In this document: in pieces, positions 11,421 to 60,360 of the stretch
Position numbering within the stretch: the first letter of the stretch is position 1
Layout: each line of letters begins with the position of its first letter
NCBI RefSeq assembly: GCF_963921235.1
Contig: NC_086102.1
Location: forward strand, 37,262,001 to 37,326,000
DNA: 64,000 nucleotides
Reading direction: 5' to 3'
Source: Mobula hypostoma
Lineage: Eukaryota
The notes under the pieces: generated by a model
What the model was told of the DNA's origin: nothing
The model's input: only the letters and a program-made list of their open reading frames with translations
Database searches by the model: none
Translations under genes and position numbers: made by a program

Positions 11421-11484
11421 ATGACACTTCAGAGAACGCAAGAGATCTGCATTGGTGTTTTTCTTTACTTTTTTCTAATTGCAG
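11421..11484 (+). CDS. Gene 1 leader exon (MTLQRTQEICIGVFLYFFLIA)
   Basis: ATG at 11421 follows a strong acceptor (tttttccatcttcAG ending 11405), so an upstream 5'UTR exon is implied. The exon encodes a hydrophobic signal-like stretch and ends in phase 1 at a GC donor (CAG|GCAAGT). Confidence 0.75.
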
Positions 11485-12550
11485 GCAAGTCTGATTTATA
11501 CCTATCATGGATGCTATTAATTACATTGATGAGACAAGACAACTATTGCCTTCCCATTCTGCACACTGCCATGCGGCTTGCTTTCACTTTATTAATCAAT
11601 ACATAGAAATTGACTCCATCTCAGCCAAAGGGTTGCAAACTTGGCCAGCTGTATCAAGGTCACTAGCATCAAGGATATTTACTTTTATTTAGAAACAGTG
11701 CAGAATAGGCCCTTTTGTCCCAATGCCTCACACCGTCCAGCAACCCACCTATTTAACCCGAGCCTAATCACAGGGTAGCTTCGAATGGACTATTCGCCAT
11801 ACTCACCAGTTCATCCTTGGAATGTGGGAGGCAACCGGAACATCCGGAGGAAACACACATGCACACGGGAAGAACGAACAACGCTCTTACAGAGATCCTG
11901 CAATTGAACTCTGTAATAGCCTTGCACTAGCCTCTACGATACTGTCGCGCCACCGTGACATCTTCAGAAAGCAATGCCTCGAAAAGGCAGCATCCATCAT
12001 CACCTCGGACATGCCCCCTCCTTATTGTTACCATCAAGGGGGTAGCAATAAGAAGAGAGCATGCCCACACACTCAACATTTTATGAACAACCTCTTCCCC
12101 TCCAACATCAGATTTCTGAACAGACATTGAACCAATCCAAGAACACTACCTCACTTTTTTTTGCTGTCTTTTTGCACTACTTATTAAAATATATGCATTT
12201 CTTATTATAATTTATAGTTTTCATGGTATTGCTGACCCAAAACAACAAATATGACGACATATGCTAGTTATGTTTAACCTCATTCTGATGCTGACTCAAA
12301 TAGTTTTAAACGATGCTCAAATTCATCATCTTCCCAATAAATGTGAGTTTTGACTTTGTTTAATTCTTTCCCTTTTGTAAATCCCTCAACTAATTTGAAG
12401 TAAGGATATCACGAATATTTGCAGAGTTCAAACTTCAAAGCCAGTTTATTATCAAAATTTGTATATGTCACCATATACTACCTTGAAGTTCATTTCCTTG
12501 CAGGCATTCACAGTACAGCAAAGAAATACAATACAATCAATGAAAACTGT

Positions 12551-58400: not shown

Positions 58401-60360
58401 ATCTTAGATTTATTTCTGTTTTCCCCTTCCTCCGCTCTGTCATTCTGGTCCCCATCCCCCTGCCAAATTAGTTTAAACCCTCCCTAACATCTCTATTAAA
58501 CTTTCCCGCCAGGATATTGGTCCCCTTCGGGTTCAGGAGTAACCTGTCCTTTTTGAACAGGTCTTACTTCCCCCAGAAGAGATCCCAATTATCCAAGAAT
58601 CTGAAACCCTGCCCCCTGCGCCAGTTTCTCAGCCACGCATTCATCTGCCTGATCCTACTATTCTTGCCCTCACTAGCACGTGGCACAGGTAGCAATCCCA
58701 AGATTACTACCCTGGAGGTCCTGCTTCTCAGCTTCCTTCCTAACTCCTGGAAATCTCTATTCAGGACCTCCTCCTTTGTCCTATCTATGTCCTACCAACA
58801 TGTACCAAGACAACTGGCTGCTCACCCTCCCCCTTCAGAATATTCAGGACCCGATCCGAGACATCCCGTACCCTGGCACCTGGGAGGCAACACACCATGC
58901 GGGTATCTCTGTCAGGCTCACAGAATCTCCTGTCCGTTCCCCTGACAATGGAATCCCCTACGTCTACCGCATTTCTCTTCTTCCTCCTTCTCTCCTGCAC
59001 AACAGCGCCAGGCTCAGTTCCAGAGACCCGGTCACTGTGGGCGTCCCCTGTCAGGTCATCCCCCTCAACAGCATCCAGAACAAGATATTTGTTGCTGAGG
59101 GGGACAGCTACAGGTGTGCTATCCACTATCTGGGCATTTCCCGGATGTAATAGAAAGTGATGTAATTGTAACTGATCTGCCAGGAAGTTGATATACTGAA
59201 GGCACTTGATATTGCTGGCTTTACCCTGTTTATCATGGTGATAATAATCTCTTGTTTTCAGTAATTGCAGCTATCTAGTCTGGTCAGTATTACCACATCA
59301 ACATTATTTCTGGAAAGTTCTCCAATCTAGTTGTAGAGAAAAATTATAGCCTTCCTTCGACTTATTTCCTGCAAACATGGTATCATTGTCATAGTGTGGA
59401 ATCTGTATGCACTGCAGTGTGCTAAGACATTCTGATGACTATCAATAGAATAAAGTACCTTTAGGACTGTAGTAACCTCTAAAGCTGATATTATTACATT
59501 TACCAACCCTTCTTGGATTCCAGACTCAGCACCAGAACAAATCAGTAAGAAGCCACACATATAAATGATGTTCATACTGAACGTAGACACAACAGACTGA
59601 AGGTATTGGAATCTAGAGCAACAAGCAAGATGTTGAAGGAACTAAGCAGATCGGAGAGCATCTGTGGAGGATAACGGACAGTTTCTGGTTGGGACTGTAC
59701 ATCTTGACCCAAAACATGTTTTGTTCAATTCCCTCCACAGATGCTCTCAGATCTACGGAATTCCTTCGGAGTCTTCCTGCCTTTCTTACTCATTGTAAAA
59801 CAGCATATTTAGTCAAAAATCATGCAAACAAATCATCTGTGTTATGCCAAATAGAGTATTGCCTCCTTGGGAATATAAACCATTTTCAGGCATTTCCGGT
59901 GTGCTTTTCACAAAATCATCTCTGCTGGACTGCTGGCACCCAATGCCCAATCTGGGATTTGTCTTCCAAAAACGTAAAAGTAAAGAAATCAACAGATGAA
60001 CGAAGCTCTGTGTTTTACACGACACCTGAACATTTCTGTTTTATTTTCTAGGCACATTGAAAGGAAATGAGACTCATACTGTGGCAATCACTTGCAACTA
60101 TTCCTCTATTAATGATCAAAATCTCACAATTGTGTGGAGATTTAGAAAATCGTCAGACTCTCCTCCAGTAGTAATCTGTCAATCAGTGCCTCAGTATGTC
60201 GATAAGTCAGATTGCGATAACAACCAATTAAAAATACGAACTAGCCATAATTCGTCATCACTTACACTACACCATGTGATGAAGGAAGCTGCAGGCGAAT
60301 ATACCTGTGAAGTTAAAACAGAAGATACGTTGAAAATATTCACCTATGTACTACAAATAG
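43348..60360 (+). CDS. HHLA2: Gene 2 (spliced, 3'-incomplete): B7-family HHLA2/B7-H7-like, leader-IgV-IgC-IgV; join(43348..43405,49701..50030,54825..55112,60052..60360); TM and tail lie beyond the window
   Basis: Four phase-1 exons form one open frame. V-C-V order is the HHLA2 architecture. Motifs [33 protein letters not shown] and LQKSLTASWKM parallel recalled human HHLA2. Confidence 0.8.
44100..45020 (-). mobile_element. Degenerate Penelope-like fragment
   Basis: Same family as 6345-7135 (TGGCCACTGGGAGATCC, GACCTGGAAGGACTG). Confidence 0.75.
45025..45735 (-). mobile_element. CR1 3' and EN fragments
   Basis: YFNTRSSVGKAGKLRACINTW (ORF 45476..45814) and a CR1 3'UTR. Confidence 0.75.
45865..46212 (-). 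mobile_element. RTE LINE 3' fragment nested in a Rex1 remnant (45745-46410)
   Basis: KRFKDVLKDNMKKCNIDINSCETNAKDRKLW (ORF 45981..46172); (GAT)n tail. Confidence 0.8.
46810..47370 (-). mobile_element. CR1 3' fragment
   Basis: CCATAAGAT tail; FFSQ.AVNLWYSLPW-type remnant. Confidence 0.85.
47572..47978. mobile_element. Palindromic element made of two inverted LTR-like arms (fold-back)
   Basis: Arms 47572-47747 and 47803-47978 are ~92% identical inverted repeats (14 mismatches in 176 nt by eye). TG...CA ends; flanked by ATCTC at 47567-47571 and 47979-47983. Confidence 0.85.
48362..48640 (+). mobile_element. Rex1-type 3' end with long (GACTAT)n tail
   Basis: Same 3' end as 16630-16860 (RSFLPVAIKLYNS). 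Confidence 0.8.
49701..50030 (+). CDS. HHLA2: Gene 2 IgV1 exon (B7-type V)
   Basis: Acceptor ttttcttttAG, donor G|GTCAGA. Translation VVLPCRF...LHW...[11 protein letters not shown]...[37 protein letters not shown]. Confidence 0.95.
50100..51010 (+). mobile_element. CR1 3' fragments
   Basis: ORFs 50339..50635 and 50629..51009. Confidence 0.85.
51180..53700. mobile_element. Cluster of Penelope terminal fragments (51180-51750 +; 51750-52030 -; 52990-53420 -; 53535-53700 -) and a Tigger-like TIR end near 52786
   Basis: CTGAAGAAGGGTCTCGGCCCGAAACGTCGAC at 51617-51647; GIY-YIG remnant (ORF 51647..52075); TACAGTGGATTCCAGTTAATT. Confidence 0.75.
53720..54200 (-). mobile_element. Rex1-type remnant
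   Basis: Minus-strand KFANDTIIVAES-like RT remnant. Confidence 0.6.
54825..55112 (+). CDS. HHLA2: Gene 2 IgC exon (B7-type C)
   Basis: Acceptor atccttccAG, donor G|GTAACC. Translation IICAITGAYPKPLLTF...TYKCNITNERLQKSLTASWKMQ. Confidence 0.9.
55398..59150 (-). mobile_element. Near full-length CR1: ORF1 esterase remnant (58785..59126), EN (57749..58366), tether and RT (55483..57192)
   Basis: GDSIVRG...CLPGARV..VHVG, LKVLYL..AITETWL and full RT motifs. In-frame stop at 57193-57195. Candidate TSD TAGAAAG at 55391-55397 and 59151-59157. Confidence 0.95.
60052..60360 (+). CDS. HHLA2: Gene 2 IgV2 exon
   Basis: Acceptor ttattttctAG, donor G|GTAAGC. Translation VAITCNY...LTIVWRF...SSLTLHHVMKEAAGEYTCEV. 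Confidence 0.9.

Follow-up and report, generated by a model that had tools for sequence, protein, structure and literature searches.

The analysed window, a 64 kb stretch of the Mobula hypostoma genome, contains two spliced immunoglobulin superfamily (IgSF) genes on the same strand, with 23,036 bp between the stop codon of gene 1 at position 20312 and the ATG of gene 2 at position 43348 (all coordinates are window positions). Exon models, splice sites and protein collinearity agree on this arrangement of two genes about 23 kb apart, as anticipated in the original prediction, which had also stated that no other recognisable gene lies between them. This proved correct as well: the 23 kb intergenic stretch (20313..43347) consists of LINE and reverse-transcriptase fragments only, its larger open reading frames being either reverse-transcriptase fragments (PF00078) or without any match, no Rfam family was found in it, and tblastn with the gene 1 and gene 2 protein families as queries detected no IgSF exon in the window beyond those of the two genes. 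The sole host-gene neighbour of gene 1 inside the 64 kb is gene 2, identified below as HHLA2, and the remainder is LINE sequence. In comparison with other elasmobranchs, dN/dS is below 1 in every exon (range 0.12-0.76).

We identify gene 2 as the HHLA2 (B7H7) orthologue of the devil ray. HHLA2 belongs to the B7 family of ligands and has an ectodomain built as IgV-IgC-IgV. Gene 2 comprises four phase-1 exons on the forward strand, all bounded by AG/GT splice sites, and is collinear with residues 1-327 of the HHLA2-like proteins of skate and basking shark. The leader exon (43348..43405), recognised by its splice sites, shares 60-65% identity with HHLA2 residues 1-20 in skate and ray. The V-set, C-type and V-set domains are encoded by a membrane-distal IgV exon (V1; 49701..50030), an IgC exon that ends in a conserved SWTASWKMQ-type motif (54825..55112) and a membrane-proximal IgV-like exon (V2; 60052..60360). 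No transmembrane or cytoplasmic exon was found in 60361-64000, where a LINE occupies 60959-63785; the 3′ exon falls beyond the window. V1 shares 59-61% identity with its elasmobranch orthologues and 41-49% with HHLA2 of coelacanth, frog and salmonids, yet V1 identity alone cannot tell HHLA2 from teleost proteins automatically named 'CD276-like' or 'VTCN1-like', and the identity of gene 2 therefore rests on the fold match of the whole ectodomain and on synteny. Searched against Swiss-Prot, the structural model of the skate orthologue retrieved human HHLA2 first (E 3.4e-28, TM 0.71, 363 residues aligned), with CD276 behind it (E 2.6e-23, TM 0.48). CIP2A is located 5 kb downstream of the basking-shark orthologue, and the order in human and cattle is IFT57-HHLA2-MYH15-CIP2A; the 10 kb flanks of skate HHLA2 are empty, and the Mobula window ends before any IFT57/MYH15/CIP2A-type neighbour. 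The skate orthologue is also named HHLA2 by NCBI, the top named matches checked outside elasmobranchs are mostly HHLA2 of coelacanth, frog and salmonids, and the coelacanth match is collinear over the V and C domains and the junction motif. The predicted kinship of gene 2 with HHLA2 is thus borne out, although gene 2 is only about 28% identical to the human protein and differs from frog and coelacanth HHLA2, in which the first V domain is duplicated.

The product of gene 1 is a type I membrane receptor consisting of a leader, a VJ domain, a C1-set domain, an uncharged transmembrane helix and an ITIM-like tail. Its five phase-1 exons, all on the forward strand, yield a spliced translation identical to the M. 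hypostoma protein P0001 of NCBI over residues 34-353. The leader exon (11421..11484 if taken to start at the conserved Met; phase 1) is conserved with the shark orthologues, which begin at the equivalent Met. The NCBI model places the start of this exon at 11406 and has a further exon upstream (8192..8275, + strand; located by tblastn of P0001 and by sequence) for the first 28 codons; because its sequence resembles C-terminal sequence of the local LINE family, that segment is probably 5′ UTR and not coding. The donor of exon 1 is GC (CAG/GCAAGT), and the remaining introns are GT-AG. In the V exon (13336..13695; Pfam V-set 58 bits, PF15910 33 bits; model pLDDT 87) the J-like motif GEGTWLKV is germline-joined to a V domain whose CDR3 is YFCEFSIEIPPP and which has an additional Cys pair. 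The C1-set exon that follows (14622..14927; Pfam C1-set 69.9 bits) completes a non-rearranging VJ-C1 build and is 60-89% identical across elasmobranchs. We know of no CD28-family member described so far that has a C1 domain. The stalk and uncharged transmembrane segment (18574..18666) precede a cytoplasmic exon (20173..20312) that terminates in AIYSLLGQHYVC and the stop codon; this tail contains the ITIM-like sequence IYSLLGQ, and its tyrosines are confined to IYSLLGQHY.

Several lines of evidence support placing the gene 1 V domain with CD28H (TMIGD2). The domain displays the CDR3 motif YxCxxxxEIPPP, which agrees with the CD28H motif tabulated in PMC11599192 and is followed, as in CD28H, by GxG in the G strand; in that table, the stretch SIEIPPP is identical in skate CD28H at an equal distance from the F-strand Cys. 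IPPP is invariant in 11/11 members of the gene 1 family, and the preceding Glu is retained in 10/11 (Gln in P0004). PF15910, a CD28-family model, matches the V domains of all 11 members and neither of the two V domains of gene 2. The extra Cys pair (LCQ...C) is shared with tetrapod CD28H. The motif resemblances to TMIGD2 that had been quoted for this gene (RVKW, ILCQ, a second Cys, VEIP) do occur in the human sequence, as judged by eye from the sequence printed in PMC11599192 supplement 3. The V fold is common to gene 1, TMIGD2/CD28H and CD28HL1-3: in a Foldseek search of Swiss-Prot with the gene 1 V model, the top 13 matches were all CD28, TMIGD2 or CTLA4, with TMIGD2 at rank 4 and of best TM-score (0.83), rmsd (1.9 Å) and identity (28%). 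NCR3 appeared only at rank 23 and SIRP was absent from the 30 best matches, in keeping with the predicted TMIGD2/CD28H rather than NCR3/SIRP type. Fold searches of PDB and the Atlas agreed, CD28, TMIGD2 and CTLA4 leading. A sequence profile of the gene 1 V domain gave higher PDB scores to TCR alpha V domains (43-49 bits) than to CD28 (38 bits), so that the domain stands near those of antigen receptors as well; HHLA2 and TMIGD2 were both absent among the 60 PDB sequence matches listed, which renders these searches non-discriminating; and a word-indexed search for homologues that took only the V domain as query yielded just three batoid proteins, CD28H being beyond its reach.

Sharks and rays alike have conserved members of the gene 1 family, which falls into two lineages, A with a tyrosine-containing tail and B with an Arg in the transmembrane helix and no tail tyrosine. 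The Arg is present in Hemitrygon, Heterodontus and Chiloscyllium; in white shark, the B-type model (P0009) stops short of the transmembrane segment. No lineage B form was found within the Mobula window. Most shark A forms carry the canonical ITIM VIYSLL; Mobula has AIYSLL, and because Y-2 is Ala in Mobula and other batoids, their ITIM is non-canonical. Judged from these sequences, lineages A and B would fit an inhibitory/activating receptor pair, a dichotomy reminiscent of SIRP alpha/beta, and they suggest that a single ligand may have been under both inhibitory and activating control before sharks and rays diverged. In joining VJ in one exon to a C1-set domain, gene 1 resembles the non-rearranging VJ-C1 genes UrIg/UrIg2, PRARP and SIRP, and the top single-domain PDB match of its C1 domain is that of UrIg2 (46.7 bits), followed by an Ig lambda C domain. 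It is distinguished from them by being membrane-bound with a V domain of the CD28H kind, and by its single C1 domain, where UrIg has three or more and SIRP has two.

Despite these affinities, the expectation that gene 1 is TMIGD2 itself was not upheld. According to PMC11599192, CD28H is defined by a single V domain, E-I-P in CDR3 (EIPPP in chondrichthyans), YxNx in the tail and fsd1/stap2 synteny. Instead of a single IgV, gene 1 has an additional C1-set exon, found in the NCBI protein and in every orthologue whose gene model is complete, and its J-like motif is fuller (GxGTxLxV); its tail is ITIM-like and contains no YxN; its genomic neighbourhood is another one, with neither fsd1 nor stap2 within the 64 kb window; and a partner lineage exists whose transmembrane helix is charged. 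Skate and epaulette shark, moreover, are reported to possess a CD28H of their own apart from this family, which has one V domain and YVNV and lies in the conserved synteny block (PMC11599192). That gene 1 should nevertheless represent TMIGD2/CD28H in cartilaginous fishes, as an orthologue that has kept its linkage to the gene of its ligand, is consistent with its V-domain motifs, with the fold match to human TMIGD2, with its position next to HHLA2 and with the apparent lack of CD28H in great white shark (PMC11599192), but in view of the domain build, the tail and the separate CD28H genes we regard it as very improbable. On the basis of motif, Pfam and fold comparison, and jointly with the assignment of gene 2 to HHLA2 and the above reading of the family, gene 1 is likely to be a differently built paralogue of TMIGD2. 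A stronger competitor, which falls a little short of an even chance, is that the adjacency merely reflects incidental clustering of IgSF genes, gene 1 being an antigen-receptor- or SIRP-like VJ-C1 paired receptor for a ligand other than HHLA2, CD47-like or otherwise. Members of the gene 1 family are named SIRP-alpha-like, Ig light chain-like or tapasin-related by NCBI, SIRP, tapasin-like and V-C1 clusters lead the full-length Atlas search, and human CD47 is close to HHLA2; the TCR alpha scores of the V profile, the UrIg2 and Ig lambda affinities of the C1 domain and the combination of ITIM and charged transmembrane forms, typical of SIRP alpha/beta, point the same way. However, the fold matches of the V domain are headed by CD28, TMIGD2 and CTLA4 with SIRP outside the best 30 in Swiss-Prot, and the SIEIPPP identity with skate CD28H and the family-wide PF15910 match also speak against this reading.

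The two lineages might also be read as chains that pair via their C1 domains in a TCR-like heterodimer, and not as separate inhibitory and activating receptors. Within a species, the A and B C1 exons are near-identical (94% in white shark, 83% in Hemitrygon) compared with only 45-54% for the V domains, both lineages encode VJ-C1 chains from neighbouring genes in divergent orientation, and the basic transmembrane residue of B recalls TCR chains. Gene conversion alone, however, suffices for homogenisation of C1, a conserved membrane-proximal Cys for an interchain bond is absent from the family, and the pairing of an ITIM chain with an adaptor-binding chain would be unusual, which makes the heterodimer improbable.

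Together with its probable paralogous relation to CD28H, including the shared phase-1 exons, the location of gene 1 beside the gene of the known CD28H ligand makes gene 1 and HHLA2 a candidate ancient linked receptor-ligand pair. The adjacency is seen in one species, Mobula: tblastn detected no partner exons in the 10 kb flanks of the gene 2 orthologues of skate and basking shark, nor in those of the gene 1 orthologues of white shark (two), Pristis and Hemitrygon (two), but such flanks are too short and the search is uninformative, because the gap in Mobula already measures 23 kb. On their assemblies, the V-C1 genes are placed on CM029982.1 at 39.10-39.37 Mb in white shark, on CM108217.1 at 39.73-39.81 Mb in Hemitrygon and on CM019858.1 near 95.7 Mb in Pristis, and HHLA2 on CM021379.1 near 53.97 Mb in Amblyraja and on OZ077462.1 near 71.25 Mb in Cetorhinus. 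Proline motifs in the FG loop of CD28-family receptors engage B7 ligands. By analogy, the EIPPP loop of gene 1 may contact the membrane-distal V domain (V1) of the HHLA2 encoded next to it, whereupon the tyrosine tail would recruit SHP-type phosphatases and damp the cell, a mechanism that we put forward tentatively; the lineage B form would signal via an ITAM adaptor. The more far-reaching proposal, that elasmobranchs keep an ancestral cis-linked cassette of HHLA2 and a CD28H-type VJ-C1 pair, inhibitory A and activating B, that binds HHLA2, appears rather unlikely at present.

The gene 1 receptor, with its CD28H-type V domain and antibody-type constant domain, is previously undescribed. In a 2024 survey of the CD28 family, all members described are single-V and the authors regard the origin of the family as unresolved. 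By combining a V domain of CD28H type with a J motif close to the canonical form and a genuine C1-set domain, this conserved receptor ties co-stimulatory receptors to antigen-receptor-like VJ-C1 genes; with its distance of 23 kb from HHLA2, gene 1 is a concrete candidate receptor for HHLA2 of sharks and rays, and this proximity makes a linked origin of B7 ligands and their receptors in a proto-MHC paralogon directly testable. Human HHLA2 is under dual activating and inhibitory control, by TMIGD2 and KIR3DL3. Were the cassette real, this dual control would have an ancient counterpart in elasmobranchs, and the CD28 family would have descended from an antigen-receptor-like VJ-C1 gene beside B7 genes.

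Gene 1, the receptor gene, lies on the + strand in exons at 11421-11484, 13336-13695, 14622-14927, 18574-18666 and 20173-20312, with phase 1 at every intron; the window itself falls at ~37.26 Mb of the Mobula hypostoma chromosome record OY992597.1. The spliced translation equals, without a mismatch, residues 34-353 of P0001, a 353-residue NCBI protein with the automatic name 'tyrosine-protein phosphatase non-receptor type substrate 1-like', whose C1 domain is 100% identical to the window exon. Intron 1 has a GC donor (GC-AG) in a perfect consensus, CAG/GCAAGT (11485-11490). The 33 additional N-terminal residues of P0001 come in the NCBI model from an exon at 8192-8275, which resembles the C-terminal part of the local LINE family, together with 11406-11420. 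Because the shark orthologues have their first Met at the equivalent of position 11421, we place the true start there, where the conserved signal peptide begins, and the annotated start is probably wrong. Since exon 2 encodes a V-set domain (58 bits, Pfam), exon 3 a C1-set domain (69.9 bits), exon 4 an uncharged transmembrane helix and exon 5 a cytoplasmic tail with the terminal AIYSLLGQHYVC, gene 1 is a VJ-C1-TM receptor and not a single-V protein. Among the single-domain PDB matches of its C1 exon, the C1 domain of shark UrIg2 scores best (46.7 bits) and the Ig lambda C domain comes next.

The V domain belongs with those of CD28H. At its end stands the near-canonical J motif GEGTWLKV; the CDR3 reads YFCEFSIEIPPP. 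According to a 2024 survey of the CD28 family, E-I-P in CDR3 is the hallmark of CD28H and EIPPP occurs only in chondrichthyans and reptiles; the CD28H entries are YICQASIEIPPPP for skate and YVCEVLIEIPPPV for epaulette shark, and the human TMIGD2 sequence of the supplement contains RVKW, ILCQ, a second Cys and VEIP, the features on which the original prediction had based the resemblance of gene 1 to TMIGD2 (PMC11599192). An additional Cys pair (C48 and C63 in the V-domain alignment A1) is invariant across the gene 1 family, and the CD28-family model PF15910 is matched by all 11 family V domains (best E 3e-9) and by neither V domain of gene 2 (Pfam). The AlphaFold model of the gene 1 V domain (pLDDT 87) retrieves CD28, TMIGD2 and CTLA4 as its top 13 Swiss-Prot matches, with human TMIGD2 leading in TM-score (0.83), rmsd (1.9 Å, the lowest) and identity (28%), while NCR3 ranks 23 and SIRP is absent from the top 30; searches of PDB (CTLA-4, CD28) and of the ESM Atlas (CTLA4-like clusters) agree. 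As TCR alpha V domains in PDB score higher (43-49 bits) than CD28 (38 bits) with a sequence profile built from the family, the domain lies between antigen-receptor and CD28-family V domains.

The further claim that gene 1 is TMIGD2/CD28H itself did not hold. The survey's definition of CD28H asks for one V domain only, a YxNx motif in the tail and fsd1/stap2 as syntenic neighbours, and a separate gene of this type, with YVNV, is reported from chr 29 of little skate and chr 28 of epaulette shark (PMC11599192). Gene 1 has an extra C1-set domain and lacks YxNx, and there is no fsd1/stap2 within the window; orthology was therefore rejected. Gene 1 is instead a TMIGD2 paralogue, a new build within the CD28H kind. 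The survey includes no V-C1 members (PMC11599192), and we found no publication on this V-C1 family or on its linkage to HHLA2.

Gene 2 is the already-known HHLA2/B7H7, as had been predicted. Its four exons (43348-43405, 49701-50030, 54825-55112 and 60052-60360, +), all phase 1, line up in order with residues 1-327 of the proteins from skate and basking shark. In an exhaustive HMMER search the nearest single-domain match of V1 was the basking-shark orthologue P0085 (61% identity); among the matches whose names were looked up, those of coelacanth, several frogs and one salmonid are named HHLA2 (41-49%), and other teleost matches of similar identity are auto-named CD276-like or VTCN1-like, or are unnamed. 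The skate orthologue P0170 carries the NCBI name HHLA2. Frog HHLA2 aligns with 90% of P0085 (E 4e-50), and coelacanth HHLA2 can be aligned with P0085 from V through C, past the conserved motif that closes the C domain and into the third domain. The AlphaFold model of P0170 (pLDDT 75) has human HHLA2 as its best Swiss-Prot match (E 3.4e-28, TM 0.71/0.64, 363 residues aligned), ahead of CD276 (E 2.6e-23, TM 0.48). The PDB sequence searches carry no weight for or against this identity, because the 60 matches listed comprise only CD276, VTCN1, PD-L1 and butyrophilins, HHLA2 not being among them. CIP2A is the basking-shark gene 5 kb downstream of HHLA2 (locus L002, 32906-37944, -); the order in human and cattle is IFT57-HHLA2-MYH15-CIP2A (KIAA1524). 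No MYH15 separates HHLA2 from CIP2A in the basking-shark stretch examined, an arrangement that differs from the mammalian one.

As originally described, the two spliced genes share a strand, with no other recognisable gene between them; the 23,036 bp of the gap contain nothing recognisable besides reverse-transcriptase fragments. The 11 kb upstream of gene 1 is LINE sequence too. Long copies of a single LINE family, with endonuclease and reverse-transcriptase ORFs, lie at 1546-2925 (-), 8723-11118 (+), 55483-58366 (-) and 60959-63785 (+). One is within the HHLA2 intron separating the C and V2 exons; another follows V2 immediately, at 60959-63785, and displaces the last HHLA2 exon beyond the window, in which no TM/cytoplasmic exon was found.

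The C1 domain of gene 1 defines a family of 13 proteins, Mobula included (60-100% identity), from rays, sawfish, sawshark, horn shark, and sixgill-order, lamniform, carcharhiniform and orectolobiform sharks. Lineage A (P0001, P0002, P0003, P0006, P0007, P0008, P0010, P0011) has an uncharged TM and the tail xIYSLLG(Q/P), or IYLMLGQ in Pristis; most sharks carry VIYSLL, a canonical ITIM, and Mobula, Hemitrygon and sawshark carry AIYSLL. Lineage B (P0004, P0005, P0012) has an Arg in the TM and no tyrosine motif in the tail; P0009, whose model ends before the TM, is assigned to it by V-domain similarity. No B gene is present in the window; elsewhere A and B are transcribed divergently, with 68 kb between them in Hemitrygon and about 230 kb in white shark. 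V domains cluster by lineage, white-shark B being 75% identical to horn-shark B versus 54% to white-shark A, and both lineages retain IPPP. Within a species, the A and B C1 exons share 94% amino-acid identity in white shark (L003/L004) and 83% in Hemitrygon (L007/L008), and the V exons 45-54%; against Mobula, dS is low for the C1 exon (0.24) versus 1.14 for V. This homogenisation of the C1 exon within species points to exon-limited gene conversion or shared structural constraint.

In Mobula, a B7-type ligand gene adjoins a CD28H-type VJ-C1 receptor gene with an ITIM-like tail, and both are intact, conserved and under purifying selection (dN/dS 0.12-0.76). CD28/CTLA4-B7 recognition uses an FG-loop proline motif, and human TMIGD2 is a receptor for HHLA2. 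By analogy with these pairs, the EIPPP loop of gene 1 may engage HHLA2 V1, upon which the A form would signal via its tail tyrosine and the B form via an adaptor held by the TM Arg; that the gene 1 receptor binds HHLA2 is a proposal we make tentatively and with some doubt. The main rival holds that the adjacency is incidental and that the family members are paired receptors resembling SIRP or PRARP, with a ligand other than HHLA2. The NCBI names of family members and the whole-protein Atlas neighbours of gene 1 point this way, towards SIRP and tapasin-like V-C1 proteins, and the V-domain fold matches favour CD28, TMIGD2 and CTLA4. As a whole structure, gene 1 comes closest in the ESM Atlas to a 66-member chordate V+C1 cluster (~305 residues, 'uncharacterized protein'), which may represent this same family or a PRARP-like relative from bony vertebrates. 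Because C1 is homogenised between A and B within species, it is also possible that the two chains form a heterodimer.

The observation behind the original prediction is confirmed and its interpretation partly supported, and the linkage of gene 1 to HHLA2 seen in Mobula is a worthwhile, testable lead.
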